A stretch of 64,000 nucleotides of DNA from Macrostomum lignano (GCA_002269645.1 NIVC01000018.1:1-64000), one strand, 5' to 3'; counted from the stretch's first letter, positions 1-37,574 are shown. Program-made: numbers and translations. Notes: generated by a model not told the origin, from the sequence alone.

Positions 1-434
1 GATTTATTAAACCAAAGAAAGAAATTATTTTTAAGAAATTGTGTTTTTTAATGGATTTGTGTTAATCATTTTTGCTCTTTGCTTGGTTGCCCTGAAGGTG
101 GCACTAGATTGCTAGTCAATTATGTTCATTTCTCATTTGGCCTTGCCTAATATATGCAAGCTGTCAAAATATTAGATTTTTACCATGATGTATAGTTATA
201 TAGTTAACAAGACAGAATGGTAGGAGAATATTTGATGGAAATAAAATAAAAAACTTTGAAAATTCAGACATTATGATTTGAAAATTTTAATAAATAGTCA
301 ATTAACTTTTTGGAATCTTATAGACATAACTTTTAAGCTTGTTTTTTGAAAGGTCTATTGTGCATTATTGTTTCTAATGTAGAAAACAGTTTAAAAAGAT
401 TGCTTTATACTTTCAATACTTTTACTGATTTCAG

Positions 435-3400
435 ATGACATAATACCCAGTACTAATTCAATGCCATCAAAAAATCGAAACATAGGAGTTGATTGTGGAA
501 ATTGTAGCAAACGTTTGCTCCCCGCAAAGTTTGTTTGCTTTTTCTGGAAAGCAAAGAATGAAGTATATATATCAGTGAAAAACCAATTCAAAGTAGCTGC
601 AATGGCTAGTTTGTACATTGAAAAGGTAGGAGCAAAGGATGAAGTACGATGTCAATTTTGCAATGCCAGTGTTGGAGTTCAGCTGCCATTCGGACCGCAT
701 GGTTCGAATTATATCTCATTAGGAAAGAAAAAAGTCATTGTTGGAGGGATTCAATGTGAGCCAAACGACAAAGTTTCCCAGAAATTGATACCACGGCTAA
801 AGAAACAAATCGATGAGGTGAACATGGACACCTTCTATGGCAGATCAATAGTCCCTGATTTCGGCAACTGGTCCAGTCTAATAGCTCGCCAAGTCCCAGT
901 TCAGTTCGCTTCGCCCTCTGCTCCTGAGCACTTCGACTGGTCCGACCTCCTTGTATCGGACAAAGTGCCACGGACCTACCAGCTGGAGGCTTTCGTTGAG
1001 GCACTTCAGCGAGATCTTGTACTGGTGCTGCCCACTGGCTCAGGCAAGACGCTGGTGGCAGCTCTGCTGCTGGCTCGGATGCGAGCTCTGAACCCGGGAC
1101 GGATGGGGGCCCTGCTGGTGGAGCGAGTGCCGCTGGTGTTCCAGCAGGCCAAGGCGCTGGAGGCGGACACTGGGCTAAAAGTGGCCGCGCTGTGCGGAGA
1201 AATTATGACCTCTTGGAAAATTCGAGAACTTCTTGATGGAGCGCATGATTTGGTAAGCAATCTTGTTATTTTTAACTATTTACCCAAGTCTCGTCTCTCC
1301 TTAACAAAAAAGCTTTTCCGGATCGTTTTAGGTGGTGATCACGGCAGGCGCCCTGCTCTCCCTAATTACTAATCGGCGAATTCCAGACTTGAGCGCGTTT
1401 TCATGCATTGTAATCGACGAGTGCCACCACGCGAGTTCCCCGCGGCACAACTTCCCGCGCGTCCTTAAGCTGAACCACCAACTGCCAGAGGATATGCGAC
1501 CTCGTTTGCTAGGCTTGACTGCATCGCCTGTTGAACCTGGAGACGGCGATTCCGAAGGACAGAAGAAACTGCGTCGTCTTTTATCATTTTTTTCTCCTGA
1601 TTGCGTTGCGTTCCGACCTGCAAAAGCAGAGGAGTCGGCCGTGCAAACAGTGACCAAGCTCTGTCATCCGTCCTCGCTGCAGATACAATTCACTGAGGAC
1701 CTTAGCAAACTTTTAACAGATAGCAACGAAAAACTGAACCTTGGCCTACCGATCCGAGAGTCGATGCCTGTGCCAAGCAACCGGCTGCGCATGCTGGCTG
1801 GTCAGCTGCGCGGCTTCATCTATAGCGGCCTGCCACAATTTCGAAACAACCGAGAAGAGATTCGCGACCTGCTGTGTCTCCTGGCCGCCATGGAAGCATC
1901 CCAACTTGTTGGCGTCTCAAAGGCAGCCCCTTTTCTCGACGACCTTCGCTGCATTTCCACAGCCACCATGCGATTTCGCTCTGATCCAAACTGGCAGCTG
2001 GATGTTTCTGAGCGCATGCGGGTGGTCGAAGCCGAGGCCGCATCGCTGTTGCAGGTCGAGAACAAAGAGTCTCGACTTCTCGTGCTGACGTGGACTCGCC
2101 GAACGGCCCGACTGCTGCACGCGCGCCTGTCCGAGCTCTTCCCGAACCTCAGGCCCCAGCTGGTCGTAGGACGTGGTGGCGCAGACGGCATGGACTGGGA
2201 CGGCGAGCAGTCAGTGGCTATCGACAGCTTCAATGACGGCAGCAGTCGTCTGATTGTGAGCACAGCAGTGCTGGAAGAGGGTCTCGACGTCAGCGCGTGC
2301 GACGTTGTTATCAGGTTCGATGCAGCCAAGTCGCTTGTGCAGCTGTTGCAGAGCCGCGGCCGGGCGCGCAAAAAGGACAGTCGGTTCTTGATGGTCGTCG
2401 ATGAAAACGAAGCGGCCGCTGCAACTGATTTGAGCGAAAGAGAAAATATGCTGAACCGTGTGGTGGACGATCACTCGCTTGAAAACGGGGTTCCATCCGA
2501 GCTGACGCGGCAAATGGTAAAGCATTTGGCTGAACGAAAGAGCCCTGTGCAAGCTGCTCGATCTGTTGTAGCTCACTACTCAATGGGATTGACAGGCAAA
2601 ATGGGAGGCCAGATAATGGTCCAGCTATGCTGCCCCGAGTTGCAGAGGAAAGACTGTGATAAAGAAGCTTTAATGCTAAGTATTGAGAAAGAAAACTTCG
2701 TTAAAGTTCGCTCCATCGATTTGCTATTTGATCAGTGTGAGAATCATTCTTTGCCTTCTGGGTTGTTTCCACGAGACTCAACAGTCGCTGCCGTGTACTT
2801 GGAAACGCACTCAACTTTAGATTCTCCTCTTGGCATTTATCACGAATTCGCGCGTCGTTGGTCATTCGAACTGAACAATAAGCCAATTTATGCGATGCCA
2901 GACGTGCGAAAAGTGGAAGATTCGGACGACGATTCCATTAAAAAATCCGAAAGAACAGTTCAGACTCTCAGTTCCGTTGCAATTGGCCAGTTTCAGACAA
3001 AAACTAAAGTAGTTGAGGCGTTGCATATTTCGGAAGAAAATATCGAATTAGAAATAGATTCTAATCGCAATCTCATTTCAGTATTTTTTCGTGCTGCTGG
3101 AGTTTCACTGGTAGTATCAAGCATTGGTGGAACTAACGGGTTTGCAATGGTGGACTGGTCCAAAGAATTGATTGCTTTACCTTTGGCAGTAGCGCCAACT
3201 ATTCTAAAAACTGTGGAACAGGAGGATCAGCAAAACGACTGGGATTTCAATCCGATTTCTTCTGAAAGCTTTTGCAACACTGAAGATCTTTCAGGAAAAA
3301 TTCGTCAGAAATTTGAAACCAATTCTGTACTCATCCTGCATCTACCAAGAGCCCCTCGATCAGCTGAGCCCCTCGACTGGATGAGACTCCGTGCGACGTT

Positions 3401-6400
3401 TCCTCTGCCGCTGCTCGATACCCGACTTGAGTCCGAAGAGTATGCCTCCCCAGGGGAAAGTGAGACGCTCTTCGAATACTGTCATAGAGTTAAGCCATTC
3501 CAGGAATTGTCCGTCCGTGACAAAGCAGAGTTCCAGTGCCGCTGGCAAATGCAGGCTCTGATTGACAGCCGTCGCTTCCTCATCACTCAAGAATCAGCTG
3601 CAGGTATTGAAAATAGAATCGCAGCAGCTGCACAAGCAGACTCTGAACTCGATAACGACTGCCCAACAAACCTCATTAAACTGGCCAACGCACTGTTGAC
3701 GTTGTCGGCTACTGGGGATGGCGACGCCTTCTTTGAAGATGTGCTTGGAGACCGGCTGAACTCTGCGCTTAGTGTTCTCGAGGTGACCGATGAGGATGCG
3801 GAAGACGCTGCTGTTGGTCCGCCAGTTGCATGTGGCTCACTGCTCGTGAAGCGAGTTGCTGTGACTCCAACAAGAGTGGTATTGTTCCCCGCCACTCCCG
3901 TAGCATCGAGTCGCCTTCTGCGTCGGATCCCTCCAGAAAGACTCGTGATGGTCGCCTTCACCGACGAGTCATGCGGAGTCGTGCGAGGCGGCGGCGTCAA
4001 TGTTGCCTCTGCTGCTTCAGTCGGTGCTCGATTCACCAAAGTGCTGCGGGACGGTCTGACTCTGGCCGGACGGATGTACCGGTTTTTTTCGGCAAGCAGC
4101 GGTCAGCTACGAACGAGCCGGTGCTTCTTTGTGGCCGCAGAGTCTGTCGAGGAAGTGCAGCGACTGCGAGACCAGCTGGTCGAGAATCCGACAGAGTTCC
4201 GATCGGTTTCCAAATATCTGTCTCGACTGGGACTTTTTCATACAGCTGACACATGGGTAGCCAAATTAGAGACCAACCAAGTATCGAAATGTATTGACCA
4301 TCGAGCTCTCAATGACGACCTTCTGACGGACGGTGAGTATCAGTTCGTGCATGTATATGAGCTTTAATGTGCATTGTGCACAGCAAATTTTGACCTCGCA
4401 AAGCATTCGCACATTGCAGGAAGCGGGAAAATCAGCTCAGAACTCGCTATGTCAATTAAATCCAAACTGGACCTGCCAGAGCTACCGTTTGCCTTCCAAT
4501 TTCGCTTTGGTGGAGCCAAAGGAGTCCTGACCACTGTCTCCGATAAGGACCCAAATCTAGACTTCAGCAAGGAATCTTGCTGAGACCATCCACTGTGAAG
4601 TTCAAAAGCTCAGACACAAACTTGTGCATTGTCGGAACGTCTCAGTGCGGTAGACTTTGCCTCAACAGAGAGATCATCACTCTGCTGGAGGCGCTGGCCT
4701 CCAAGTGTGACAGCTGGAACCCGTCGCAACGTCTGCGAAACATTCTCGACGCGGAACTGCGAAAAATAGCCGAGTCTCTAGCGACTCCTTCGGCAGCCAC
4801 CGCGGCACTTCGAGAATTTATTGACAAACCGAGCTTGGCAACAGCGAGTGTTGTGGAAGCTGCGCGACACTTCAACTTTCTGACCGATCCGCACTGGCTC
4901 GGTCTGCTGCGATGCGTTTTCCGATTTCGGCTGTCCGACCTGCAGAAGCGAGCTGCTCTGCCAGTGGGCGACCTCGGTTGTCGCGTAATGGGCGCACCTG
5001 ATCCGCTAGAAGTGCTGGCTGAGGGCCAGGTGTTTCTTCGAATCAAGCGGAAACCCAGTGATCAGGCTAAGCAGATTGAGGGTCCAGTGCTGATATATCG
5101 AAACCCATGCCTGCATCCGGGAGACGTTCGAGTGGTGCAGGCCGTGGCCAAACCGCAGCTGTGTGGGTGGCTTAACCTGCTGCTGCTTCCTTCGCGCACT
5201 GACTGCCGCCGCTCACTGGCTGCCGATTGCAGCGGCGGTGACCTCGACGGAGACCAGTTTGGAGTTGTGTGGGACCCGGAGCTCGTGCCGCCTCTAGAGG
5301 CAGTCCACGAACCTCTGGACTATGCGAAGCTGGCATCAAACGAGCCACAGCTACCCGAAGGAGCTGACGTTACGAACCCAGTCTTGCTGGCCAACTTCTG
5401 CGCACAGAACTTTGCGAACAGCTTTCTTGGTCGAGTAGCGAATTTGCACCTGGCCATTTGTGATCAGCTGCCTGGTGGCGCCCTCAACCAGTTGGCGATC
5501 GAAGTTGCAAAGGCTCAATCGGTCGCAGTCGACTTTCCAAAGACAGGAATCGTACCGGAGGTGCCTGAAGCAGCAGTAAAATTCGTTAAAGAGAAAGGCT
5601 ACCCAGACTTCATGGAGCGCTCTGATTCCTACCCTTCAGATAAGCTTCTGGGTCAGTTGTACCGAAGATGCCGCTCCTGCGACCTGGATTGGGATCTGCT
5701 GGACTCGATCGATCAAGAAAATCAACAGTACGAGTACGATGTGACATGGGCCGGTCAGGAGAAGTTTTTGAAAAGCGCCAGTCGGCTGTTTGAGCTCTAC
5801 CGCTCTGATCTGCGGGCACTGATGTCGCAGTGGGGCGCAAGAAGCGACAGGGAGCTGCAGCTCGGTCGCTGCTTTCAGTGGCACCCGCTGCTTCGAACAG
5901 ATCGTGGTCGCGCTCACATAGCCATGCGGCAGGGGTTTGACGCTTTGGGCAACAAGTACCGGCGAATATTCGATCAACTTGCTGGGGACGACCAGAACAA
6001 ACGCAGAGCTCAGGCAGCTGCATGGTTTGCAGTGGCGTACAAAAGTGTCGGGACCTCGAAGGCGAAGAAGCCACGAGGTTTAAGTTTCCCGTGGGTCGTG
6101 ACCGACGTTTTGTGTGAAATTCGGTCTCACGGCATGTCGACCTCTGTACTGCAGACCGGCAGCGCGTCACTGCAGTCAATTGATGAAGGTCTCGAAGTGT
6201 CGATCGGTCGCTCGGTCTTTGCCTTCTTCCGCAAATCTCTTCCGGGTCTGCGCGATGCAGTCGGTCGTGCCGACGCAGCCGCCGCACTGGTCAGCGGTCG
6301 CCTGTCCCAGCAGTGTGCAGGAGTGCTCAGTTGCAAGGTGTATGGCTCAGCCTCGATTCTTGTGTGTGATGAGGCTTCATCAGACATCGACTTGTGTGTG

Positions 6401-9400
6401 CTACCTCTTGATAAAGCGTACTCTGAGCCGTGGCTTCCCGCAGAGGTTTCTGTACTGGGAGAATGCGCTCGCCATCGTCATTGGCTCGAGACGCTTGTGT
6501 GGCCCTCACTGGATGCTGCAGTGTTGGAAAAGACTCGATACCTCGATCGCCAAGTTCCGTTGATTCGATGCCGTCTTGGACTGGACGGCGGTGAGGACGT
6601 GGATGATGGCCAGGAGTGCGACATCAGTATGAACAGTGTAGGTCTGGGAAAGACGCGCTACCTTCTCAGCTTGTACAGTCGCTGTCCGTGGCGGCTACCT
6701 TTGCTGTGGCTGCTGGTTCAGTGGGCGAGGGCAGCTGGAATCGTTCGGTCATCAAGTGAGAGCCAGGGGCTGATGCCTACAGCCGAGTTTTACGCTCTTG
6801 TTCTGCATTGCTTTTCTGAGTTCGACGAAGTCGCAAGCAACTTCGAGGAAAGTAATAAATGTCTGCTTGATCTATCATTGTCTGAGCGCCTAGCTTTTTG
6901 ATGGACCGGCTGACTGATAAAGCTTCGGATGCGAATTTTGCCTTTTTGGGCAGCTGCATACTACGTTTTGTTCGGTTTTGCAGTGAATTGTCCGGTGCCG
7001 TGACGTACAAGTGGCAAAGAGTTGAATCCGCTTCATCGGTTCAGATTTCGGCTGAGGTCGTTAGAGGCGTGGCGGAACTTGCGGACGTTGCCTCTCGCGT
7101 TCTCGTCTACACCCACAGCGCAGCGTCCATTGTGTCTTCCGCCGCAATTATTTCAAGTCTCTCTGGAAAAGCCATTCGGCTGACACAGCGTTTGCCCGGA
7201 ATTTTAAGCACTGAAATGTTGCGATCCCTTCGCTTTCACGAGACACGTTTGCGCTTGACTACCGGATGTGATTCTGTACAACTGGAAGAGACCACAGGAT
7301 CGCGCCGACTTCTGATACGGGCAATCGGAGCCCCGTCAGCTATCGATCGCCTTCGACATGAACTCCGCGAACTGTCTGCTAGATTTGGCTTGTCTGGCAG
7401 CTGGACGAGGAAGTACAACAACGGTTTGCGCTACTTTTTGGAGGGAGGTGGAACCGTCATGGCCACTCGATGTCTTTCAAACAGTTGTCGGATCGAGCTA
7501 ATTGATCACCTTGGCTCAGTGAATGTTGAGCATCAAATGCATGATGTTTGCGTTCCGCTGTGTCTCGGGACGGATGGTATTGATTTTACATCATGGACAG
7601 ATGAAGCCGCGCGTCGCTTATTCGCTCTGATGTGTCGCCAGTTTTCTCGCCTTCGATCATCGAGGTCTGAATGCCAAGTTTCTGCAATGCTAAAAGACCT
7701 GGAACTTTCAGTTCGCGTTGGCCGAGTTTATTTCCTAAACGCAACTAACGGTCTTCCTGACGACCGCCGTAGCATATCTCTAGCTGAGCTGGCAGTAGCA
7801 CTGGCGGCCGGTAAGAAGTTCCGCAAGGGTTGCGAGCGACCCGACTTTCGTCGCCGCGATGCCTCCGATGCCACTAGAAAGCATCGCGCAGAGAAAATGG
7901 TTAGTCTTGCGGCTCCTGGCGGCGCATCTCAAGAGCCTCATCCGCCGCTTAAACCGGAACGGGCTCCGAAGCCAAACCGTCGAAAGAAATACAAACTAGG
8001 CGTTGGCTTTCTAGCTGGAATTGTTGCGGATCTGCATCGAATTAGCACCGGAGCAACCGTAGAAGTCTACGAGAAGGCCCTGAAATCATTAGGCTATGTA
8101 GAAATTCCTAAACAGACAGAGCCGGCTCTGACCGGCTGGAAGGTGTCCGTGCGCTTGAGCGCTTCCTATCAGGCTCACCTGCAGCATGATCTTTCATTGC
8201 AGCTAGTGCGAGTCTACGAGCGACCGCTGAATTGTATTTACATGAATTTATTAGACTCTGATAGGCCTGGCGAGAGAAACTCAGCGATTACAGCCTCCAG
8301 CACAGTTGACTGTGAAACTGGAAGTCCAAGTGAAGCCATCGGATTGGAAAATGCGCCGAGAGAAAAATCGAACTCGCACAAACAGAAGAAGAATAGAAAA
8401 TTCAAACGCAAGCGCAAAGGCGATAAAAAAGATGGAGATAAGCATTATCTCGCTGGTGCGGAACAATCTGCTCGGGATGCAACTCAATCTTTGGACAGAA
8501 GAGACGATTCCATTGAAACTCAGGGAGCCGCTGAAACACAAACGGTCAGCTCAGGCTTAACAGAGCAGAGGCAGAGCACCAATGTGATGGATGACAGCGC
8601 CTGTAGCAATTTAGCAGGCAAACAAGGTAAGACAAATGAAGTCAAAAGGCGTTGTTGCAACCGCTGGAATCATGGAAACTACTTGCGAACAGCGCAAATC
8701 TCCAGAAATCGATTGGAGTATACTAAAACATCGAACATCAAGAAAGAAAATTGGTGCATGCATTAAAGTCAAAAGCGGAACTGAAAATCTTACAAATGTC
8801 AGCACAACCGACGGTGCAACCTCCTCTGAAGTTTTCACCGAGGTCGCAACTGGTTGCAGCACTAGCAACGAAGGCTCGTCAGCTAAGACCAACCAGAGGG
8901 GTCAAAGAGGTCAAGAACGCGGCCCAAAAGCAGCTGGCGTAGTGGAAGCTAAAATAGATACGGAAAGTGTGGAATCCTTGGCAGAATCCAAAAGCGACGC
9001 GGAACGCTCAGGTGCAGCAGTGAATGCATTGAGCACTAATGACCGCGTTTTTTCGAATGAGAAGAAATCCAATAAAAACTTCACTTTGGTGACTCCTGAA
9101 AGTGAATTCTCAGCAACAAGCAGACAGAGTGTCGGTGGTGAAGTGGTAGATGCCGCAGCTGCAATGCCTCCCAGCGAGTTGACTAAGAAAGATGGCAGAC
9201 GCCAAAGAAAAGCAGCGTCGAACAACAAATCTTCAAGCAGTGTCGATCAGAGACAAAAGTGCGCCAATGAAGCCGAATTCTGCGGACGACCGAGCACAGT
9301 TGATGCCAGCGGCAGAGCTGCAGCTGCCGGCTACCTGGAGCAGCTGGACTTGCACATTAACCTGGCCGCGTGCGAACCAGTCCGCCCGAGCATGCACCGG

Positions 9401-9799
9401 GAACTTTTCCCAGACGGTGAAGAGTTTCCCTATCTGGTCCGAGATCCAACCACTGGCAAAGTAGTGATCAGCGACCGGGTGCCAAAGTCGCTGACTGTCC
9501 TGGTGACGCGTCAGCGGTCGGTTGTTCGTCAATTTCGCCGTCCGAGCAGCGACGCCGAAGATGTTTGGCCGGAGTTGCGCATCATCAGCGGCTCGCTGCA
9601 CTTTGGCGGCGACCAAAATCTCGAGGCGCAGCCGGTGTGCGATTTGTCGATGCACTTTGACCCAGCGCCGCTGCTGACGGCGGCACAGTACGGTCGGTAT
9701 GGCAACCTCAGCGGCTACTGCAGACGCCTGATGCAGCTCAGCTTGGAACTGACTAGTGCGCTCAAGGAGCAAATCCGGCTGGCTGCTGGTGATGGTTAG
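435..9799 (+). CDS. Large RNAi-type multidomain gene: Zn module + RIG-I/Dicer-like DExH helicase + eukaryotic RdRP + Cid1/TUT-like nucleotidyltransferase + KH-like + unknown C-terminal domain (frameshifted as assembled; possibly 5' incomplete)
   Basis: Inferred exons 435-1252, 1332-4332, 4420-9799. GT-AG introns 1253-1331 (79 nt) and 4333-4419 (87 nt) restore HDL|VVITAG and TD(G)|SGKIS. Helicase motifs PRTYQLE, LPTGSGKT, DECHH (1416), GLTASP, STAVLEEGLDV, QSRGRAR. RdRP motifs AFQFRFGGAKG, RPSTVKF, RNPCLHPGD, SGGDLDGD (5240-5254), AVDFPKTG, YPDFME. NTase motifs YGS (6341), DID (6383-6391), VPLIR, CDIS (6620). Frame breaks near 4570, 6897 and 8645 (the last could instead be intron 8627-8705). 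Acceptor-like tttcag at 429-434. Confidence 0.9.
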
Positions 9800-9891
9800 A
9801 GACTACTGCCTTGTTGTATTAGTTTTTTGCTTTCGTCTTCGATTAGCTACTGACAGCTAGGGCGTTCGTCTTTGTCCTTTTTTATTCACCC

Positions 9892-10203
9892 TAATAATAA
9901 TAATATTAGTAGTAATATTAATAATTGATTACACCTGGCCCAATCAACCGACAGCCCAGCCGCAGCTATTGCGCGGCGCATCTGAAGGCTGCGTACGGCT
10001 GTTCAGTCCAAGGACTGGGGGGGGGGGGCGCCACATACACCCTCAATTACCCCAGCTAATGCTGGCACCCATTTTACAGCTGAGTGAGCTAAAGCAATGC
10101 AGAGTTAATTGTCTTGCTCAAGCACACATATTGTTCTAATGGGATAGGGAATCGAACCGCCGACCTTCAAGTCGCGCGAGTCCGACTCTCTAACCACTAG
10201 GCG
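9892..10203 (-). mobile_element. tRNA-derived SINE, near full length, with (TTA)n-like tail
   Basis: Minus strand begins gcctagtggttagagagtcggactc...ggttcgattccc (A/B-box pattern). Body is shared with the copy at 21042-21262 (cttaactctgcattgct...cagctgtaaaatgggtgccagcattagctggggtaattgagggtgt). AT-rich simple tail at 9892-9935. Confidence 0.8.
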
Positions 10204-11347
10204 GCAACCTCCTTCCTCTGAATATCCGAAACTGCACTGTAGCTCCCGACAAGCAAAGTCAAAGCTGATAACCAACAAACTCATTTTAAACAATCGGTTT
10301 AAATAAAAAAGTTTACATTTTTTAAAACATAAATTTCTTTTTTTGCTAAACCTTTTCCCAAGATTTGGGTGTAAAAACCGGTTCATGCACAGCGTGTTGT
10401 GTGCGCTTATTTTTTCATTCATGAAGTTAAACAGTACATTTTTAATCCAGCAGAATACTATTTCACATTACAAGCTGTCACAGTATTTTTTTTATATACG
10501 CTTTGCAGAATCTCAAATTATTTATACGCTCGTACTTTTCGAAACAGCTTCAATTTTACGCTGGTTTAACAGTCACGCTCGCATATTCAGTGTTGCATGG
10601 GCAGGTCCCGTTGTTAAGCGTTGATCCGTTGGTATCGGAAGTTACCTTTTATAACAATTAACGAACCATGGTTACTTCTTCAGGGTAACGCAATAACGAC
10701 TATACGTTACTTTTTGTTCACTTCCGTTACTCTTTTTTACTTTTATTATTTGTTATCTACAATTTTTCTAAGTCTCATTCAATTTGAATGATTAAAAATG
10801 ATTCTCAAAACATACAGAAATCCATATTGTCAACAGAAATCATTTCATTTCATTTCATTATTGGCTTAGGTGAAGAATGACGCTGAGAGGACCATACCCT
10901 AAAATCAGTCTGGTGGACAGAGTGAGCTAGGGTGTATGATGTGTGCATGCTTGACTGCAGGTGATTTGGAGTTTGATGTTTTTGAATTAAATCAAATTGA
11001 TAGCGAAAAAACCGAATGGTCGATATGAATATATGAGCAAGCCACCAAATTTGTAAGTAGCTATTTTCAACAAGTAAGGAGTTAGGGATTCACTCTCTGA
11101 AAAAAGTACGTTATTTTTATCATTTTTAACGGAATCTATGGCTGCCTTTACCACTTTGTACCACTAACGAAAGTAACGTTTTTAATAACTCTGCCAAACA
11201 CTGGCTATATTAAATTATTCATTCTGTCTACTCTATAACATTCTTTTATTATATAGATTTTTCCTATTGCTATTATTGTTCTTGTTTTTTTATGTCAAAT
11301 GTTTCTAAATAACATTTTCATCTCCAGAACCACCTTTTATCCTTTTT

Positions 11348-12761
11348 TCAGTGCTGTTTAGTACCAGAATTTCTAGTATAGTTTTCTAACGAATCAGCTG
11401 CTTTTTCTCGAAAGTGATAGTTGTGGATTCTTTTTAGTATTCCTCTATCAGACCCAGTTGTCACACTTTCGATGGTGGATTCCGCATCGTCGTCAATCTT
11501 GGTGACTTTGGACCCATAGGCAGCCAGACAAGCGCTCATTCGGGCCACACAGTCCATGTCTCGCCGCTTGTATACATCCACTGAGCTCGAATTCTTGTGT
11601 CCCGTCATTAGTGTAATCGCTTGATTATCGAAACCGGCCTTGGCCAAACAGTTCACCTAAGTTTCAGCAGTTGGGTAAGACAGTATTCTTACAGTTTTAC
11701 TGAAGTGAGTAGGCCATGCAATCTTTACTCACCGTGGTTACTCGCACACAATGGTTGGTGTACTTCCGCTGCAGAGCCAGACACGCACTCAGATTCTTCA
11801 TGAAGTCTCCAAGTGAATCTTTGCCGAGTCGTTGGCAGGCTGAGAAGCCAGACTTATTGAGCCTTGGGAACAACACCTTACATCCATTCGGTAGTTGAGA
11901 GACGTACATTTTAAAGGCTTCGACGGGACAAACAGCTTTGTCTTGCACGCTGTACATCCGAGCTAACTTGAGATCCTTGAATGCCTTCTCGTTCAACGAC
12001 GCTTTAACATTTTTCGACAGCATGGCGACAGCGACGCGTACAAACTCCGTACCTCCTTCTGACACTATCTCAAAACATCCAGGTGTCAACTCTCTCAGAT
12101 TTTCTCGGCCTCGCAGTGCGAAATGGAGCAGAACGTTGAAAATGTTTTCGTCCTGCAGTTTACGAAGGGACGTTCGGTCAAAGTATGCGCGAATAGTTTG
12201 CATGTCGTCCTCGGAAATAGCTTCGTATTTGTCTACCTTCTCGACGTGTCCTTCCATGTACATTTTCACCATGGCGACAAGAACGCCATTGCAACGCTTG
12301 AAGGCTTCTCCGGTAATGATGTTCACCTGGCGATTAACGGACGGGGATTGCAGGTGGCGTTGAATAGCCGCACGAAAACAGATGAGAGACTTTGGCGCAT
12401 AGTAAGTTCCATCCTGCTTTCGAAGGGATGAATAGAAAAGCCTCAGATAATCGTTCAAAAATCGATCCGGAACACGCTCAAACTCCTGGCAGAGCCCCTT
12501 CTCGTTGAGGAACTGTCGGAACCTTGCCACGTGAAGCTTCCGTTGCGTCTCGGTCGATTTCGGCACTGAGTCACTCTCAAGTCGGTCCAACATTTCCAGA
12601 TCTTCGCTACCTAGCTCAGGCAGCCCGTTGGAACTGGACGACGCATCCAGGTTGTCCATCTCCAGAACGTAGCGCGTGCTCGACTCTCGGGTGACAAAAG
12701 CCAACTCGTCCGTGGAGAGTCCACATATTTCTCCGCCAGGAATGTTTGCGTAGCGAATCAT
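11348..12761 (-). mobile_element. Crypton-type tyrosine recombinase (DUF3504 / ZMYM-KCTD1-QRICH1-related), two exons, ~445 aa, apparently intact
   Basis: Exons 12761-11733 and 11656-11348; 76-nt GT-AG intron 11732-11657 joins HCVRVTT|VNCLAKAG. YR catalytic set is present: R in HFALRGREN, HxxR in NHCVR, H in TGHKN, Y in SVDVY. Confidence 0.85.
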
Positions 12762-12865
12762 AGCTACTTTTCCTATTTGCACTCCGAATAGGAGAATTAA
12801 TTCAAGCTCAAAATCAACTTGAGAATAAACTCATGGCAGCCAGGCTAGCTGTCTTCACTGTCCTT

Positions 12866-13544: not shown

Positions 13545-16260
13545 TTAGTGAGCCCGACTTTTCTCAAATTGTGTGATTTGAGAATGCCAGAGCACACAGC
13601 AACCAGCGCTATCACAGTTGACGCAGCTGCCGACGTCACAGAACATGAACCTGTCATCGCTACTGGCATCAGCACAGCAGCCAGCGCTTTTAACGATGCG
13701 AGCGGCAACACAACTGTCAGCGCAGTAGCGCTCAAGCTGCCTCCATGCATTTTGGGACTTCCAGCCCCGAGCATGGTTTATCCTAGCCGAGGCTCAGTCC
13801 ACACTCGGGGGCGTCACGCAGGACGCAACCAAATACTACTATCTAGTCGCAGCGCTAGACCAACAGTCCGCAGAACGTTTCTTCGATGTTCTCGAGAACC
13901 CCCCCCCCCCTACTGAAGACAAGTACGGGCAGGGCAGTTGAAGGCTCGCCTGCTTGTTGGCACTTTCGGTTTATAGAGGCAACAAAAGGCCAATCGATTG
14001 CTCAGCATAACCGGCCCCGGTGATCATCGTCTGTCTGAGCTAATGGACGAAATGTTGGCGTTGCTGGGTGACCACTCACCCTGCATACTTTTTGAAAAAT
14101 TGTTCCGTCAGCAGCTACATGTACCGGCCAACATCCGTACGGCGTTGGTCTCCGCGGATTGCAAGAAACCCCGATCGGCGGCACTACTCGCCGACAAGCT
14201 TTAGGCCAGTCGACCTCAGCCAGCGATGGCGGTGATTCAGCAGCCCGACCAGCCTATGGTCGCGGTCGTCCATGAGAGTCTTGTCAACCGTTTTGACAGG
14301 GGTCAGCCACCACAGCGCCACTCTGAGGAAGCCAGTGGTCTTTGCTTTTTACTTTTTCGGCAGGAAGGCCAGGCGATGCTAAGCCCCGTGTAGGTTTCAG
14401 GGAAATGGGCAGGCCGGCCTCAGTAAACAGCTTGGCGGCCGGCAGCAGCAGTCTACTCCTCGTCCCAGATTTTCAGACAGGCCGGCGTTTTCTTGTTGAC
14501 ACCGGTGCCGAAGTTGGCATCTTTCCGATCACCGGAGCAGATGCCCGAATGCTGCGCCAAGGCCCATCGCTCTACGCCGTCAACGGTAGTCAAATCCGAA
14601 CTTTTGGCACCCGTCAGCTCACTCTGGACCTAGGCATCCGGCGTTGCTCTCGGCCATTCATTCTGGCTGCGGTTCAGCAACCACTGATCGGCATGGATTT
14701 TCTCCGGCATCATGGCCTGCTGGTGGACCTTCCGCATCGGCGTCTGCTCGATGCTCACTCGCTTTCCAGCGTGCACCTAATTGACAGCATGGGGCCGGGC
14801 CTGCAGCTCGCTGGACAAGTTAGCAGTGGCCAAGGAGGAGTTCCGACTCTTGAAGCAGCTCGGCATCGTGCGCCGGTCCAACAGCCCGTGGTCAGCGCCG
14901 CTTCACATGGTGCCCAGCAGCCCAAGGCCTCGGGCAGCTGCATGGCGACCCTGTGGCGATTTTAGGCGGCTTAATGACATCACCGTTCCTGGCCGCTACC
15001 CGGTGCCGCATATCCAGGATTTTTTATCGCAACTGGCCGCTTGTCCAATTTTCTCAAATATTGCATTGTGCGCGGTTACCACCAGGTGCCAGTGATGGCG
15101 GCAGATGTGCCCAAGACCGCCGTCGTCACCCCGTTTGACTTTTTGAATTCCTGCGAATGGCATTCTGTTTGAAAAACGAGGCCCAGGCTTTTCAGCGCCT
15201 GGTGGACTCTATCTGCCAGGATCTGGATTTCGTTTTCGCTTATATAGACGATTTCCTGGTGGCCAGCAGCAATCCACCTGCTGTTCCAGCGACTCTCCAG
15301 CAGCGGCCTCCTAATCAATCAGGCAAAGTGTCAGTTCGGCCGCAGAGAGATCGACTTAACTGAATCACTGAGAATCAACACTCAGGGAGCTGTGCCGCTG
15401 CCTGCCAAGGTCGAGGCCATCGCTCGTTTTTCACCACCCTCCACGTCAAGGGCCTGCAGGATTCCGTCGGCATGGTGAATTTCTACCACCGGTTTGTGCC
15501 GCGGGCTGCACAGCTGTTGCGACCCATCCACGCAGCCACCGCCGGCAAAAACAAGCTTGTCTACTGGACACCCGAATTGACGACCGCCTATTATTAATGC
15601 TAAGCAGGCGTTGGCAGGCACTGCCATATTGGCACACCCGCTGACCCATGCGCCCATTGGCCTCACCGTGGATGCATCTGATTTCGCCGTCGGAGCTGCA
15701 TTGGAGCAACGGGTGGGCAACGCTTGGAAGCCCCTTGCTTTCTTCAGCCGGCAACTACGCACCCCCGAACAGAAGTACAGCGCTTTCGACCACGTGCTGC
15801 TCGTCCTATACTTGGCGGTCCGGCATTTTCGCTACTTCCTAGAAGGCCGAGTTTTCACCGTCCACTGACCATAAGCCGCTGGTCGCCGCCATGTCGAAAA
15901 TGTCGGATCCTTGCTCAGCAAGGCAGCAGCACCACCTGGCTTATGTGTCCGAATTCACCACGAATATCCAACATGTGGCAGGCAAGGACAACGCAGCAGT
16001 GGACGTGCACGGTGGGTTCTGTTCAGCCCCAGTTCCTCCCTGGTGTTGATTTCATGGGAATGGCCAAGGTGCAGCAGGCGGATCCAGCGAACCAGACCAG
16101 CAGCAGCCTCCGGCTAGCGCAGGTGCAATTCGGTCCCAGGTTGGATTTGTTGTGCGACACCTCCACCGGCCGACCGTGCCTTTTCGTTCCGCCGGATTTT
16201 CACCGTACCGTATTTGATGCCATTCACGGCCTCTCGCACCCGTCCGTCCGCAGCACGGCA
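13545..16260 (+). mobile_element. Decayed Gypsy LTR retrotransposon, CsRn1-like (gag-PR-RT-RNaseH-partial IN), multiple frameshifts, 3' truncated
   Basis: PBS-like tagtgagcccgac (13546-13558, resembling the Trp PBS tggtgaccccgac) follows ...gccaca. Gag KLPP(F)WDFQPRAWF..AEAQ..TKYYYLV across a frameshift; CHCC-type knuckle LCFYFFGRKARRC.APC. PR FLVDTGA; RT WRPCGDFRRLN and YIDDFLV; RNase H LTVDASDFAVGAALEQ; IN zinc finger IHGLSHP. Confidence 0.88.
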
Positions 16261-19991: not shown

Positions 19992-20505
19992 CAAGGGTCG
20001 GCAAACTTTTTCAACGTTTCAACGTAAGGGCCAGATATAAAATTTAGCGCATGACTGCGGGCCAGAGAGAGAGGAGAGAAGAGAGGCAATAGAGGAGGAA
20101 AAGGAAGAAAAGAGGAGAGAGAGAGGAGATGAGAGGAGAGTGGAGATGAGAGGGAGAAGAGGGAAGAGAAGGGAGGCGTGGGGAGAGGGGAGAGAGGCAA
20201 GATGAAGTGAGAAAGGTGAGAAGATAGAGGAGAGGGGAGAGAGGGTCGAAGGGGGAGAGGAGGGAAGGGATATGAGAGGGGAGAGGTGGGAGAGGAGAGA
20301 GGAGATAAGAGAGGAGAGTGGAGATGAGAGGAGAGGGAAGAGAAGGGAGGCGTGGGGAGAGGGGAGAGAGGGAAGATGAGGTGAGAAGGGAGAGAAGAAA
20401 GAGAAGAGGGGAGAGAGAATCGAAGGGGGAGAGGAGGGAAGGGATATGAGAGGGGAGAGGTGGGGAGAGGAGAGAGGCGATATGAGAGATGAGAGGGTAG
20501 ATGAG

Positions 20506-20539
<34 letters not shown>

Positions 20540-20667
20540 GGATAGGAGACCCCGGAGGAGCGGAGAGAGGAGGAGAGGAGACCTGAGAAGAGACACAAAC
20601 CTTGAGCGGGCCGGATTGCTATTGTGAAGTTTCAAAGGACCCGAGGGCCGGAGTTTGCCAACCCCTG
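19992..20667. mobile_element. hAT-like MITE filled with a GA-rich low-complexity expansion
   Basis: TIRs caagggtcggcaaact / agtttgccaacccctg. Internal polypurine tract 20060-20590 with an internal duplication. No matching 8-bp TSD seen. Confidence 0.65.
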
Positions 20668-22733: not shown

Positions 22734-25226
22734 CAGTAGGAATACCAAGCCATTTTTCCGCCCGTCGAACTACCAAGAGGGGGGGAAAAATTTCCCCCCC
22801 CCCTGACAATTTTTTTGCTGCGCCGGAACGGAGCAACGCAGGCACACGAAATTCAAGAACACGGGCTAACTTTTTGTTGCGCACCTTCTCAAACAAGAAT
22901 CAAGTCGCCAACCCTCCGGACCGTCGAGATATTCGACGATTCTGCCAGAAGGTCGGATTTTTCCCATAAGCGCTAGTGTATTCAGTACATCCCTGTGCGC
23001 CAATCAGCACTGCGCCTCAGTGCAGCCTTGCCAAGTCTCCAAATTTCATCAGCACGTCGACCAAATGTGTCTGCATCAGCTCTGACTTCGTTGGTTACTG
23101 GCCTTCACCGAGACGGAGCTTCTAGACCTTCAACAGGTGGCACCAGGTGACTATGAACACCTTGATGCGAATTTCTCTAGTTTCGCCGATCAAGCCTCGA
23201 CAGTAGGCAAGCCTCAACTGCCAGACACCCTCAGCTAGTCTCCTGAGCATTCCGTCATCATCCCGACGCCGTCGGCTCCTTCAACAGATGACACCAAGTT
23301 ACTATGGACACCTTGATAAGATTTTCTCGAGTTTCACCGATCAAGCCTCGACAGTAGGCAAGCCTCAACTGCTGGACACCTTCAGCTAGTCTCCTAAGCA
23401 TTCCGTCATCATCCCGACGCCGTCGGCTCCTTTAACAGATGACACCAATTTACTATGGACACCTTGATAAGATTTTCTCGAGTTTCGCCGATCAAGCCTC
23501 GACAGTAGGCAAGCCTCAACTGCCAGACACCCTCAGCTAGTCTCCTGAGCATTCCGTCATCATCCCGACGCCGTCGGCTCCTTCAACAGATTACACCAGC
23601 TGACTATGGACATCCTGATAAGAATTTCTCTAGTTTTGCCGATCAAGCCTCGATAGTGGGCAAAAATCAACTGCTGGACATCATCAGCTAGTCAGTCAAG
23701 CATTCAGCCATCACCCCGACGCCGTCGGCACCTTCAACAGGTGGCACCAGGGGAGTAAGGACACCTGAGCGTGATTTTTCATCATGCTCTTAACATTTCT
23801 GAATCATTATAAAATGAAAAAACGGATTGAATTTACTGGCTTCTTATAAGCAAAACCCTTTCTGCATAAAAATTGGGTTCAATATTATAGTTGAATAAAC
23901 TAAACAGCTTTTCGAATAAAATATGTATGTAGCTCGTATGCATAAAAGTATGCGTAATAATAATATAATATACAGCAACATGAGTTCAAGCTTAACTATA
24001 GCAATGTCCGTGCTTTAAAAATTTTTAGAGCTTCAGAAATGTTAAGAGCATGATGAAAAATCACGCTCAGGTGTCCTTACTCCCCTGGTGCCACCTGTTG
24101 AAGGAGCCGACGGCGTCGGGATGATGACGGAAGGCTTGAGAGACTAGCTGAGAATGTCCAGCAGTTGATTTTTGCCCACTGTCGAGGCTTGATCGGCGAA
24201 ACTAGAGAAATCCGCATCAGGGTGTCCTTACTCCCCTGGTGCCACCTGTTGAAGGTGCCGACGGCGTCGGGGTGATGGCTAAATGCTTAGGAGACTAGCT
24301 GAAGGTGTCCGGCAGTTGAGGCTTGCCTACTGTCGAGGCTTGATCGGCGAAACTAGAGAAATTCGCATCAGGGTGTCCATAGTCACCTGATGCCACCTGT
24401 TGAAGGAGCCGACGGTGTCGGGATGATGACGGAATGCTCAGGAGACTAGCTGAGGGTGTCCGGCAGTTGAGGCTTGCCTACTGTCGAGGCTTGATCGGCG
24501 AAACTAGAGAAATTCGCATCAAGGTGTTCATAGCCACCTGGTGTCATCTGTTGAAGGAGTCGACGGCGTCGGGATGATGACGGAATGCTTGAGAGACTAG
24601 CTAACAATGTCCGTCGGTTGAGGTTTGCCCATTATTGAAGCTTGATAAGAAAGACCTGACATAGTTGCAAAAGGACGTCCATAGTCACCTGATGCCACCT
24701 GTTGAAGGAGCCGACGGTGTCGGGATGATGACGGAATGCTCAGGAGACTAGCTGAGGGTGTCTGGCAGTTGAGGCTTGCCTACTGTCGAGGCTTGATCGG
24801 TGAAACTGGAGAAATTCGCATCAAGGTGTTCATAGTCACCTGGTGCCACCTGTTGAAGGTCTAGAAGCTCCGTCTCGGTGAAGGCCAGTAACCAACGAAG
24901 TCAGAGCTGATGCAGACACATTTGGTCGACGTGCTGATGAAATTTGGAGACTTGGCAAGGCTGCACTGAGGCGCAGTGCTGATTGGCGCACAGGGATGTA
25001 CTGAATACACTAGCGCTTATGGGAAAAATCCGACCTTCTGGCAGAATCGTCGAATATCTCGACGGTCCGGAGGGTTGGCGACTTGATTCTTGTTTGAGAA
25101 GGTGCGCAACAAAAAGTTAGCCCGTGTTCTTGAATTTCGTGTGCCTGCGTTGCTCCGTTCCGGCGCAGCAAAAAAAATTGTCAGGGGGGGGGGGGAATTT
25201 TTCCCCCCCTCTTGGTAGTTCTACTG
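22734..25226. mobile_element. Foldback-type non-autonomous DNA transposon with ~1.1-kb inverted arms containing 151-bp tandem repeats, TTAA target duplication
   Basis: TTAA at 22730-22733 and 25227-25230. Termini cagtag(g)aa(c)taccaag. Arm 22734-~23803 is the reverse complement of ~24033-25226 around a ~230-bp AT-rich spacer. Repeat register cctt(c/t)aacag at 23127, 23278, 23429, 23580, 23731 gives period 151; the right arm has one extra unit. Confidence 0.85.
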
Positions 25227-26332: not shown

Positions 26333-27722
26333 ATGCGTCGAATTCTTAATCCACTCGTCGACTATTCAAAAGGTTTTATTGGCAACTTCGATCCAAACGT
26401 CCTACCGCTCGATTTCGTAAAGTCACGCGCTGGTGGAGATTTTCAAGATCATCAGTGGCTGGCGACTGAGATGAAAAGATATGAAGAAGAAGTGGAGTTG
26501 GAAGATTTATACGAGATAGAGACGTTTGAGACACCACTGTTGGATGGTGGCGGTCGTTTTGCTATAGTCGACAGTGTTGCCGCGCTGAACGAGTCTGTCC
26601 GTCCAAAATGCACAATCAATCGGAACAACTGGGCCCTGCGAATTTTCCAGGCATGGGTGAGCTCTCGTGTCAGTGAGATCGGCATGAAGCCCATCACCGA
26701 GTTCAGCTGTGAGGAAATCAATACGATTCTCGGTCGCTTCATCCACGAGGTGCGAAAGGTCAACGGCGAGCGTTATCCTAGAGGGTCATTAGTATCGATA
26801 GCCGCTGGACTCAATTCGGCCATTCGAGAGGTCCAGCCGACAGTAGATCTGTTCAAGTCAATGGAACTACGGCCATTCAGGGACTCGTTGGACGCTGCCA
26901 TGAAACTGTCAACCGCCGCTGGTACTTCACTCAACAGTAAGCCAGCTGGGATTTTGTGTTTCTGACGAAGAAAAAATATGGCAGTCTGGAGTCCTCGGCT
27001 TGGATAATCCTGATCAGCTGACCAAGACGCTCTTTTTTCTCAATGGACTCCACTTTGCTCTACGTGGAGGTGAAGAGCATTCGAATCTGATGCTTTCCCA
27101 GATAACAATTGAAATACGCGACAACGAAGAGTGTCTTATTTACCGAGAAGCCTCATCAAAGACCTACCATGGCGGCTTGAATGACAAACGTCGCAAACAA
27201 GTGGAGCGGTTGTACGTCCCTTCTCACGCTAGATCCGTCTGTCATCTACAAGCGTTCAAGACTTATCTAAAGGTGCGTCCCCCAGACGCTACACGATTCT
27301 ACCTCCAATCGGCCAAAAAGTGGGATAGCGGTGCGGCGTGGTATTGTAACAGACCGATTGGCAAAAACTACATGTGCAAAATGATGGCTACGATCACCGA
27401 GGATGCTGGCGTGCCCAAGCTGACAAACCACAGCCTGAGGGAAACATGTGCGACGCGTCTCTTTCAAGCTGGTGTGGACGAGCAGCTTATAATGGAGCGT
27501 ACTGGCCATCGCAGTGTCGACGGCGTACGTGCGTACAAGCGAACATCTACGAACCTAATCAAGTCGTCTAGTCTGGTGGTCGATGGCAGGCCGATTCAAG
27601 AAGCCACGACCTCATCTGGTGCATCTGGAAGTGGTGGCCACAGCTTCGTATTCAACAACTGTTCCGTTGTTCAAAACATTTGTACGATGGGTACCTGTAG
27701 TCGACCTGATGGATTGCTATAA
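26333..27722 (+). mobile_element. Second Crypton-type tyrosine recombinase (DUF3504), one +1 frameshift near 26955
   Basis: N-terminal NNWALRIFQAW...LGRFIHEVRKVNGERYPRGSL; C-terminal VSDEEKIWQSGVLGLDNPDQL, HFALRGGEEH, NHSLRETCATRL, TGHRSVDGVRAYKR. Removing one T from atttt at 26953-26957 joins the two ORFs. Element probably spans ~25906-27976. Confidence 0.85.
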
Positions 27723-28554: not shown

Positions 28555-28880
28555 CGGGGCGGGGGAGACCCAAAGTGGGGGGCGGATTCCAGGGGGTGAA
28601 GAGCCAAATTAAGGGGGGGCGGATTCCGGGGGTGAAGAGCTAAATTAGGGGGGCGGATTCCGGGGGTGAAGAGCTAAATTAGGGGGGCGGATTCCGGGGG
28701 TGAAGAGCTAAATTAGGGGGGCGGATTCCGGGGGTGAAGAGCTAAATTAGGGGGGGGGGCGGATTCCGGGGGTGAAGAGCTAAATTAGGGGGGAGGGGCG
28801 GATTCCGTGGGTGAAGAGCTAAATTAGGGGGGGGGCGGATTCAGGGGGTGAAAAGCCAAATTAGAGGAGGGGGCGGGCGG
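28555..28880 (+). repeat. G-rich ~32-34 bp minisatellite
   Basis: Unit g(5-9)cggattccgggggtgaagagctaaatta, about 8 copies with variable G-run length. Confidence 0.9.
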
Positions 28881-33884: not shown

Positions 33885-33947
33885 GGAGTGCGAGCATGTG
33901 TTTTGTATTCAATTGGACTTGCTGGTGGCTACGTGAAGTGAGCATTG

Positions 33948-34585
33948 GTGGCCCAGCAACTGAGGATCTGGGAGGCTGGCCCAGCAACTGAGGATCTGGG
34001 AGGCTGGCACAGGAACTGAGGATCTGGGAGGCTGGCACAGGAACTGAGGATCTGGGAGGCTGGCACAAGAACTGAGGATCTGGGAGGCTGGCCCAGCACT
34101 GGTGATCTGGGAGACTGGCCCAGCAACTGGGGATCTGAGAGGCTGGCCCAGCAACTGGTGATCTGGAAGACTGGCCCAGCAACTGGGGATCTGAGAGGCT
34201 GGCCTAGCAACTGAGGATCTGGGAGGCTGGCCCAGCAACTGAGGATCTGGGAGGCTGGCCTAGCAACTGAGGATCTGGGAGACTGGCCCAGCAACTGAGG
34301 ATCTGGGAGGCTGGCCTAGCAACTGAGGATCTGGGAGGCTGGCCCAGTAACTGAGGATCTGGGAGGCTGGCCCAGTAACTGAGGATCTGGGAGGCTGGCC
34401 CAGCAACTGGGGATCTGGGAGGCTGGCCCAGCAACTGGAGATCTGGGAGGCTGGCCTAGCAACTGAGGATCTGGGAGGCTGACCCAGCAACTGAGGATCT
34501 GGGAGGCTGGCCCAGCAACTGAGGATCTGGGAGGCTGGCCCAGTAACTGAGGATCTGGGAGGCTGGCCCAGCAACTGGTGATCTG
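33948..34585. repeat. 28-bp minisatellite immediately upstream of the CEBPZ first coding exon
   Basis: ggaggctggcccagcaactgaggatctg, about 23 copies; the array ends ~20 nt from an acceptor-like AG at 33930-33929. Confidence 0.95.
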
Positions 34586-35904: not shown

Positions 35905-36302
35905 CGGACGAAACTCTGCCCTGGGGAAGGCAGGCCTAATCTAGCTCAGCCAATGAGAGAGCAGTAAGAAAGAGGTTAAAGTTAGATGGACGAAACTCAG
36001 CCCTGGGAGGGGGGGGGCAGGCCGCCTTATCTAGGCCAGCCAATGAGAGAGCAGTAAGAAAGAGTTCAAAGTTAGACGGACGAAACTCTGCCCTGGGGCC
36101 TGGGGAGGCAGGCCTAATCTAGCTCAGCCAATGAGAGAGCAGTAAGAAAGAGGTTAAAGTTAGATGGACGAAACTCAGCCCTGGGAGGGGGGGGGGGCAG
36201 GCCGCCCTATCTAGGCCAGCCAATGAGAGAGCAGTAAGAAAGAGTTCAAAGTTAGACGGACGAAACTCAGCCCTGGGGGAGGCAGGCCATAATCTAGCTC
36301 AG
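35905..36302. repeat. ~85-90 bp tandem repeat with alternating A/B variants
   Basis: Shared core ga(c/t)ggacgaaactc(t/a)gccctggg...gccaatgagagagcagtaagaaagag; order A-B-A-B-partial A. Confidence 0.85.
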
Positions 36303-37514: not shown

Positions 37515-37574
37515 TGCTGAAATTGACCGAATGCCAATAAAACTGTTAGATAAAACGTTTGACGATGATGAGAG

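Follow-up and report, generated by a model that had tools for sequence, protein, structure and literature searches.

In fission yeast, ciliates and nematodes, RNA-dependent RNA polymerases (RdRPs), helicases and nucleotidyltransferases (NTases) co-purify or cooperate genetically, and the coupling between tailing an RNA and copying it is debated. The RNA-directed RNA polymerase complex (RDRC) of Schizosaccharomyces pombe is made up of Rdp1, Hrr1 and Cid12. Tetrahymena Rdr1 assembles with the nucleotidyl transferases Rdn1 and Rdn2, the RDRs of Paramecium work with Cid1 and Cid2, and in Caenorhabditis elegans RRF-1 and EGO-1 act with DRH-3 and on the pUG tails that are made by MUT-2/RDE-3. In this work we describe a gene of the flatworm Macrostomum lignano that encodes all three activities in one chain. 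It lies in a stretch of 64,000 nucleotides (GCA_002269645.1 NIVC01000018.1:1-64000), the whole of which is referred to here as the window.

Fusions of a helicase with an RdRP have been published for Dictyostelium and extended to oomycetes, Hydra and Nematostella, and were placed in RDR-gamma, an assignment made for the Hydra and oomycete relatives (PMC4791657). M. lignano is the flatworm that has been reported to retain RdRPs (PMC5594548; a second source is bioRxiv 10.64898/2026.03.11.711021). The helicase-RdRP half of the gene is therefore no novelty. In Dictyostelium, RrpC is required for the spreading of small interfering RNAs (siRNAs) and for DIRS-1 silencing (PMC3661229, PMC3950715). No mention of a nucleotidyltransferase was found in the papers on helicase-RdRPs, on M. 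lignano RdRPs and on the Dictyostelium Rrp proteins. For the fusion of an RdRP with an NTase the literature search returned one mention, the legend of a figure with two amoebozoan RdRPs that carry a PAP nucleotidyltransferase domain (bioRxiv 10.1101/2023.10.19.562841); subscription journals were mostly uncovered by this search, so an earlier description is possible.

Positions 461-9799 of the + strand of the window are one nuclear gene of M. lignano, with its ATG at 461 and its stop at 9797-9799. The corrected coding sequence has a single terminal stop and encodes a protein of 3031 residues if positions 8627-8705 are spliced out, or 3058 residues if they are coding. The reading path follows a chain of + strand open reading frames (ORFs; 461-1372, 1332-4367, 4374-4583, 4577-6901, 6898-8766 and 8636-9799). 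From the N- to the C-terminus the domains are a CxxC...CxxC zinc domain, a superfamily 2 (SF2) helicase of the Dicer/RIG-I-like receptor (RLR) type, the RdRP, an NTase of the Cid1/GLD-2 type, a KH fold and further C-terminal domains. An initial annotation of the window, made from the sequence alone, had placed a helicase, an RdRP with an intact DLDGD and an NTase with its full catalytic triad on one reading path, and both Pfam and the motifs bear this out over 461-9799 (+).

Even when the ORFs are taken uncorrected, Pfam finds the two halves of DEAD/ResIII on the first and second ORFs, a Helicase_C domain, an RdRP that extends across three ORFs and, on the fourth, a sub-threshold MTPAP-like nucleotidyltransferase palm. 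The uninterrupted ORF 4577-6901 holds both the catalytic loop of the RdRP and the complete NTase triad with no stop between them, hence the fusion of these two enzymes is free of any frame correction, as had been argued at the outset. The corrected protein aligns from end to end with 31 full-length relatives, and homologues cross every junction. Two of these junctions are GT-AG introns. The first (1253-1331, +, 79 nt, GTAAGC...TTTTAG) splits the DEAD domain of the helicase; its removal joins AHDL to VVITAGALL, which matches the gene model P0010, and leaves a continuous DEAD profile (positions 2-160). The second (4333-4419, +, 87 nt, GTGAGT...TTGCAG, phase 1) lies inside the RdRP domain, where its removal restores the conserved motif LLTDGSGKIS, the same as in P0010.

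The RdRP occupies 3861-6094 (+), a region that contains intron 2 and the first of the frame breaks discussed below. It comprises a cellular RdRP domain (Pfam, residues 1108-1681) together with the head and the C-terminal helices up to a conserved SFPW motif. The match of the corrected protein to PF05183 is full-length, with an E-value of 2.3e-116 over profile positions 1-581 of 582, and the catalytic DLDGD is found at residues 1539-1543 (5240-5254, +). By these sequence features the RdRP is complete with its catalytic loop, and RNA-templated synthesis is predicted.

The helicase core (residues 170-611; 968-2372, +) is recognized by both Pfam and structures in the Protein Data Bank (PDB), and encloses intron 1. 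It carries motif I (GSGKT, 1037-1051), motif II (DECH, 1416-1427), motif III (TASP, 1518-1529) and motif VI (QSRGRAR, 2349-2369), all on the + strand. On the corrected protein the Pfam E-values are 1.4e-16 for DEAD, 7e-14 for ResIII and 9.8e-12 for Helicase_C. The closest helicases in the PDB are a reconstructed ancestral Dicer helicase (E 1e-38), followed by Arabidopsis DCL1/DCL4, LGP2, RIG-I, Dicer-2 and MDA5; the matches to Dicer and RLR helicases range from E 1e-38 to 1e-22, and the alignment with LGP2 covers Hel1-Hel2i-Hel2. Judged by these profile matches, the label 'RLR/Dicer-type' is correct. Between the helicase and the RdRP lies a poorly conserved linker of about 455 residues (650-1105; 2487-3854, +), that is occupied in the family alignment at low identity and contains no Pfam match and no recognised domain.

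Downstream of the RdRP, at 6173-7149 (+; residues 1850-2175), follows an NTase of the non-canonical poly(A)/poly(U) polymerase type, made up of a palm and a PAP-associated-like domain, with the second frame break inside it. Its catalytic residues are the GS of a YGS motif (residues 1906-1908; GS at 6344-6349, +), a DID motif (D1920 and D1922; 6383-6391, +) and the third aspartate, D1999 (codon 6620-6622, within CDISM at 6617-6631, +). In an alignment of seven family sequences (A1) the columns of the G-S, the DxD and the third aspartate are invariant (S89, D101, D103 and D180). As a single sequence the domain retrieves only GLD-2 from the PDB, at E 0.21. The profile of A1 retrieves GLD-2 at E 3.3e-10, and then CutA, Cid1, trypanosome TUT4, mtPAP, TUT7, TUT4 and Tailor.

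Structure prediction points the same way. An AlphaFold2 (AF2) model has a predicted local distance difference test (pLDDT) score of 65-89 over residues 1850-2175, with low confidence elsewhere, and the best 32 Foldseek matches in the PDB are all terminal uridylyltransferases (TUTases) or non-canonical poly(A) polymerases (ncPAPs), with a probability of 1.00. The model aligns with CutA, TUT7, mtPAP and Cid1 over about 320-400 columns with a target template modelling (TM) score of about 0.5, while CD-NTases, the CCA-adding enzyme and members of Pol X appear only beyond E 0.01. The predicted fold is thus a Pol-beta palm with PAP-associated fingers, and the assignment of positions 6100-7100 to a Pol-beta-like NTase, on which the initial annotation depended, stands on the profile and on the AF2/Foldseek matches to TUTases and ncPAPs. 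The placement as a Cid1/GLD-2-type enzyme, weak on the single sequence, is solid with the family profile and the predicted structure. Among the Pfam domains that had been anticipated, DEAD, ResIII, Helicase_C and PF05183 all match; the NTase remains below threshold and PAP_assoc is missing.

The domain list had also been too short, as it left out a zinc domain at the N-terminus, the KH domain and conserved domains at the C-terminus. The zinc domain (residues 1-165, C12xxC15...C64xxC67; 461-955, +) is conserved at the N-terminus throughout the family; in alignment A2, C12, C15 and C64 are invariant and C67 is conserved in at least 90%. A Pfam search of 22 members gives sub-threshold matches to RIG-I_C-RD in 11 (best E 7e-5) and to Yippee-Mis18 in 11. 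The profile of the domain can be aligned along its own entire length with the C-terminal domains (CTDs) of LGP2 type and that of a nematode DRH protein, matching both CxxC pairs, at E 0.04-0.06. The domain may therefore be weakly related to the RLR CTD, which binds RNA ends, and to the Yippee/Mis18/MsrB fold. We treat the relationship with the RLR CTD as a lead, not a result.

Immediately after the NTase, residues ~2184-2255 (7174-7389, +) are predicted to form a type I KH fold. This came from a second AF2 model (18-sequence alignment, mean pLDDT 70), in which a beta-alpha-alpha-beta-beta-alpha unit is modelled with pLDDT 83-90. Nearly all of the top 50 Foldseek matches of this unit are type I KH domains (e.g. 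hnRNP K KH3, FUBP1, PCBP and Nova), with a TM score of about 0.7 and a root-mean-square deviation of 2.8 for hnRNP K KH3; sequence profiles give weak hints of the same (vigilin 0.21, hnRNP K 0.5). Next come one or more conserved alpha/beta domains (residues ~2270-2545; 7432-8259, +) with the motifs YF(M/L)EGS, RFG.FY and ERPL.W. They are conserved in A1, in a further alignment (A3) and across the family alignment of 31 sequences, are modelled with pLDDT of about 70-88, and returned no match in Pfam, PDB-profile and Foldseek searches. A lineage-specific, low-complexity insertion rich in K, R, S and T (residues ~2550-2900; 8272-9403, +) has an occupancy of 0.01-0.20 in the family alignment. It is followed by a conserved tail domain (residues ~2900-3031; 9401-9796, +; occupancy about 0.6-0.68) that has no recognisable relatives beyond the family. 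The alignment of this tail with the C-termini of the relatives speaks for counting the last ORF as part of the gene.

The three-enzyme fusion is not rare, contrary to what the initial annotation implied. A HMMER scan without prefilter, using the profile of the NTase and C-terminal module (A1), recovered 670 proteins with E<=0.001; 96 clusters reach E<=1e-30. Word-indexed searches with the same module, both as a single sequence and as A1, had come back empty, which the exhaustive scan identifies as a prefilter artefact. Many of the relatives have 2,300-2,900 residues, with the NTase and C-terminal module beginning near residue 1,750-1,850. Pfam finds helicase, RdRP and NTase in 4/4 full-length members tested, and the relatives P0001, P0004, P0121 and P0132 pass the Pfam gathering score for the NTase.

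In a motif census of 42 representatives of at least 2,200 residues, DxDGD is present in all 42, the NTase motif in 38, helicase motifs I and II in 31 and all three sets in 30, and each of these 30 keeps an identical domain order. The same architecture is shared by at least 30 distinct clusters (50% identity) that span most eukaryotic supergroups. Animal members are Hydra vulgaris LOC105846402 and a protein of the sponge Oopsacas minuta, both with the same order of domains; P0004 of Artemia franciscana is an N-terminally truncated model that shows RdRP and NTase only. Other members are found in dinoflagellates (Effrenium, Prorocentrum/Polarella), an oomycete (Plasmopara RDR1), Amoebozoa (Cavostelium, Heterostelium and Pelomyxa), the heterolobosean Willaertia and chytrid fungi, along with a protein of the streptophyte alga Mesotaenium and a liverwort record. 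Two of the chytrid proteins, P0215 and P0258, are named 'Interferon-induced helicase C domain-containing protein 1' (MDA5) in GenBank, an automatic name drawn from the helicase part. At least one member is an ORF of a Trinity transcript (Cavostelium) and the Hydra models are RefSeq isoforms; a single mRNA is thus documented for relatives, and for M. lignano it is predicted from the genome sequence.

With a Dicer-like DEAD and Helicase_C module that precedes the RdRP on the same polypeptide, the M. lignano gene belongs to the pan-eukaryotic helicase-RdRP lineage of Dictyostelium Rrp, oomycete RDR1 and Hydra LOC105846402. The architecture is an old, widespread eukaryotic family, and not a one-off invention. 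Its description as a Rosetta-stone fusion of three enzymes is sound at the level of domains, but the fusion is not peculiar to this gene.

What might such a protein do? On balance we favour the reading that this is a single intact nuclear gene whose protein would work as a self-contained RDRC for small-RNA silencing, since the domain set reproduces the composition of an RDRC in one chain. The analogy drawn in the initial annotation is an apt one, the same three activities being those of the S. pombe, Tetrahymena and C. elegans complexes. The annotation also proposed that the protein could sense dsRNA, tail a target 3′ end and copy it in cis, a suggestion drawn from the domain content. In such a machine the zinc domain, the helicase and the KH domain would select and hold an RNA, and clear it or translocate along it. 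The NTase would extend the template (or the product) at its 3′ end by a short untemplated tail that may mark, stabilise or recruit the RNA. The RdRP would copy the template into double-stranded RNA (dsRNA) or antisense small RNAs, and these products could enter the Dicer/Argonaute pathway to silence transposons, viruses or exogenous dsRNA targets. The domain architecture and the integrity of the motifs are read directly from the alignments; the role in RNA interference (RNAi), the coupling of tailing to copying, and whatever we propose on substrates, added nucleotide and biological targets are what we infer from them.

Several observations weigh against this reading. The window copy, taken literally, is frame-broken at three places. 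The NTase on its own matches PF22600 with an E-value of 9e-4 and 19.7 bits, below the Pfam cut-off of 27, and Pfam finds no PAP_assoc (PF03828) match in the window protein. The kinship of the zinc domain with the RLR CTD is weak (E 0.004-0.06 against the PDB, and sub-threshold in Pfam). The GxxG loop of the KH fold is not conserved, with LSTEMLRSLRF in M. lignano and some relatives keeping it (e.g. GKAR in P0001), so that RNA binding by this domain is uncertain. Secondary siRNA amplification went undetected in Nematostella (PMC12768352), although helicase-RdRPs are present there, and animal RdRPs can be functionally labile (PMC6396948). For these last two reasons amplification is not guaranteed.

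In a different reading of the same protein, the module of NTase, KH and C-terminal domains acts outside small-RNA amplification. It would be either a catalytically silent scaffold or part of an antiviral or RNA-surveillance sensor-effector, which recognises foreign RNA through its RLR-like zinc domain and its helicase and marks it for decay by tailing. The likeness of the N-terminal domain and helicase to RLR sensor modules, and with it the automatic MDA5 annotation of chytrid members, would fit such a sensor. It is also established that uridylation or adenylation by Cid1-type enzymes commonly triggers RNA decay, and Nematostella shows no RdRP-type amplification despite having such genes (PMC12768352). 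A dead domain, however, is hard to reconcile with an NTase triad that is invariant across the family. The linkage to an intact RdRP active site in 42/42 long relatives suggests that RNA copying is central, and the Dictyostelium relatives act in RNAi (PMC3661229, PMC3950715). We regard a role outside amplification as unlikely, and retain the self-contained RDRC as the working interpretation.

The second difficulty is the state of the reading frame. At the first break, between 4560 and 4561 (+), one base is missing and the frame passes from 0 to 2; the window reads CTAGACTT. Here the Pfam RdRP profile skips just 6 positions, which leaves no space for an intron, and homologues align straight through the corrected join. 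The model P0010 carries one more base than the window at this point, its sequence there being NLGLQQGILLRPS, and across the break it reads CTAGGACTT. At the second break a run of T5 stands at 6895-6899 (+) where T6 is needed, and three-frame translation passes from frame 2 to frame 1 within the C-terminal (PAP-associated-like) half of the NTase. The gene model P0122 reads SERLAFLMDRLTD across it, identical to the prediction. An intron from GT(6852) to AG(6983) was considered for this break and rejected, as its 132 nt preserve the frame and meet a stop, and the ~22-27 residues that homologues permit between the frames also rule an intron out.

The third discontinuity lies in the lineage-specific low-complexity stretch, where a shift from frame 1 to frame 2 is required between about 8618 and 8766 in three-frame translation. 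No homologue in the 31-sequence family alignment covers positions 8627-8705 (+), and we retain both models for them: either a third GT-AG intron (79 nt, GTAAGA...TCTCCAG), or a coding stretch that has lost 2 nt (AC) at 8631. A join at 8628/8693 was dropped for its non-canonical boundaries in favour of GT 8627...AG 8705.

No second copy of the gene was found inside the window. A near-identical locus, L001, is present on another contig (GCA_002269645.1 NIVC01001144.1 6856-18847). Over window positions 1-12000 the two are 99.74% identical. They differ by 15 substitutions and 14 small indels; nearly all of the indels are single-base deletions, and every one is private to one version. Compared with the window, L001 contains one more G at 4561, has T6 for the run at 6895-6899, and carries two additional bases at 8631 that let the third discontinuity be read in frame. 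L001 for its part is without bases at window positions 2938, 7662, 8358-9, 8388, 9043 and 9542, where the window stays open.

Two partial models of the gene exist for M. lignano. P0010 (UniRef) covers 19% of the RdRP ORF, at 99% identity, and is 94% identical to residues 1-847 of the corrected protein; it ends in the RdRP, at about residue 1465. P0122, a model of 1,486 residues from NIVC01001144.1, is 99.7% identical to corrected residues 870-2346, the only part it covers, and passes through both 1-nt breaks in frame. The breaks are all deletions of 1-2 nt and none is common to the window, L001 and P0010. In terms of repeat context, 6895-6899 is a T5 homopolymer, 8631 loses an AC repeat unit and 4560/4561 has no repeat around it. 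Substitutions create no stop codon, and all catalytic motifs are intact. The coding substitutions between window and L001 comprise 4 synonymous and 9 non-synonymous changes (n=13), too few sites to judge selection; the latter fall within a variable loop and the low-complexity insert.

If the breaks were real, the window copy would be a decaying paralogue, that is a pseudogene, and no full-length protein would come from this locus. Three frame disruptions in 9.1 kb are what such a copy might show, duplication is known to be extensive in the M. lignano genome, L001 too carries several small deletions in its coding region, and non-synonymous changes make up 9/13 of the coding substitutions. Decay, on the other hand, would have to have spared every catalytic motif, introduced no stop by substitution and confined the non-synonymous differences to the variable loop and the low-complexity insert. 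Deletions of 1-2 nt that are unshared among the window, L001 and P0010 are the pattern expected of long-read assembly error. We consider a pseudogene quite unlikely. Since L001 is without all three breaks, they are probably assembly indels. With no disruption shared, only short deletions and no stops made by substitution, we attribute them to long-read assembly error, or at most to lesions peculiar to individual, near-identical copies, and we conclude that the animal most probably has an intact gene.

It is very improbable that the locus instead yields separate helicase-RdRP and NTase products, through internal initiation, alternative polyadenylation or proteolysis: the gene models do split the locus (P0010 stopping inside the RdRP, P0122 limited to residues 870-2346), and no mapped indel or known contig end explains the end of P0010 or the start of P0122, but the C-terminus of P0122, divergent from residue 2347, coincides with and is explained by the L001 deletion at window position 7662, both models read through those window breaks that fall inside them, RdRP and NTase share one ORF without an intervening stop, and relatives from transcript assemblies have all domains in one ORF.

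The flanks of the gene are ordinary animal DNA. Elsewhere in the window are an ORF of the claudin/PMP22 family (36798-37514, -, E 7e-20) and one with a Brix domain (40684-41337, -, E 4e-29); as these are ordinary animal genes, the genomic context is nuclear. Remnants of Crypton-like tyrosine recombinases lie at 11697-12782 (-) and 26333-27722 (+), with matches to the QRICH1 domain, DUF3504 and Phage_integrase, and the ORF 14342-14965 (+), possibly a retroelement remnant, weakly matches a gag-polyprotein aspartyl protease (E 0.006). Minisatellites are dense at 20067-20581, 23127-24859, 28577-28876, 30498-34585, 35920-40647, 57825-58410 and 60539-63076. They include a 23-bp unit repeated 110 times (60539-63076), a 29-bp unit repeated 25 times (39926-40647) and a 151-bp unit whose arrays at 23127-23766 and 24070-24859 run in opposite directions. 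Several long spurious ORFs stem from the minisatellites, as do the strong blocks of GC skew. An Rfam scan of the window gave no match reaching the gathering score.

The helicase-RdRP half of this family is already known, whereas the NTase/KH half of the studied 'helicase-RdRPs' has gone essentially unnoticed, and the published domain schemes are to that extent incomplete. A natural single-chain version provides a Rosetta-stone argument that the coupling of tailing to copying is direct and ancient. The gene also offers a one-gene handle on this coupling, in an animal where RNAi by soaking works and transgenesis exists. More tentatively, the complete chain could represent an ancestral single-polypeptide RDRC that was already present in the last eukaryotic common ancestor, a possibility we consider less likely than not. 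If true, the RdRP, helicase and Cid12/Rdn/MUT-2-type subunits of model organisms would be its split or replaced descendants, and the pairing of a CTD-type sensor of RNA ends with a Dicer/RLR helicase would predate the RIG-I-like receptors of animals.

How, then, does the protein compare with described systems? With the RLRs and the helicase of Dicer it shares a helicase core with a Hel2i-type insertion, to which these are the closest relatives, and an RLR-CTD-like zinc domain. It differs from the RLRs in having no CARD and in that the CTD-like domain is N-terminal, not C-terminal, to the helicase. Pfam finds no RNase III or PAZ domain in the 3,031 residues either, and for these reasons the protein is neither an RLR nor a Dicer. 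With the terminal nucleotidyltransferases (TENTs) Cid1, GLD-2, TUT4, TUT7 and CutA it has in common the G-S, the DxD, the third aspartate and a fold of palm and PAP-associated type. The best match by sequence profile is GLD-2 (3e-10), and the best by fold are CutA, TUT7, mtPAP and Cid1. Unlike in the TENTs, the NTase is embedded in a 3,000-residue protein downstream of an RdRP, and its single-sequence Pfam match is sub-threshold.

The RDR-gamma helicase-RdRPs, among them Dictyostelium RrpA, RrpB and RrpC, RDR1 of Phytophthora and Plasmopara, and the RdRPs of Hydra and Nematostella, have the same N-terminal, Dicer-like DEAD/Helicase_C module fused to a cellular RdRP, Hydra vulgaris LOC105846402 aligns with the window protein from end to end (29% identity over about 2,600 columns), and RDR1 of Plasmopara halstedii and an RdRP of Heterostelium album have the C-terminal module in common with it. 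The published descriptions, in contrast, end at helicase and RdRP and leave the NTase, KH, C-terminal and zinc domains undiscussed, and the M. lignano protein has a lineage-specific low-complexity insert of about 350 residues.

Finally, in the RDRC-type complexes a helicase, an RdRP and a non-canonical nucleotidyltransferase likewise cooperate in small-RNA biogenesis, and C. elegans DRH-3 is itself a helicase of the Dicer/RLR type. There the activities reside on separate polypeptides and here on one chain; the comparison is one of how the protein may work, and not of membership in these complexes.

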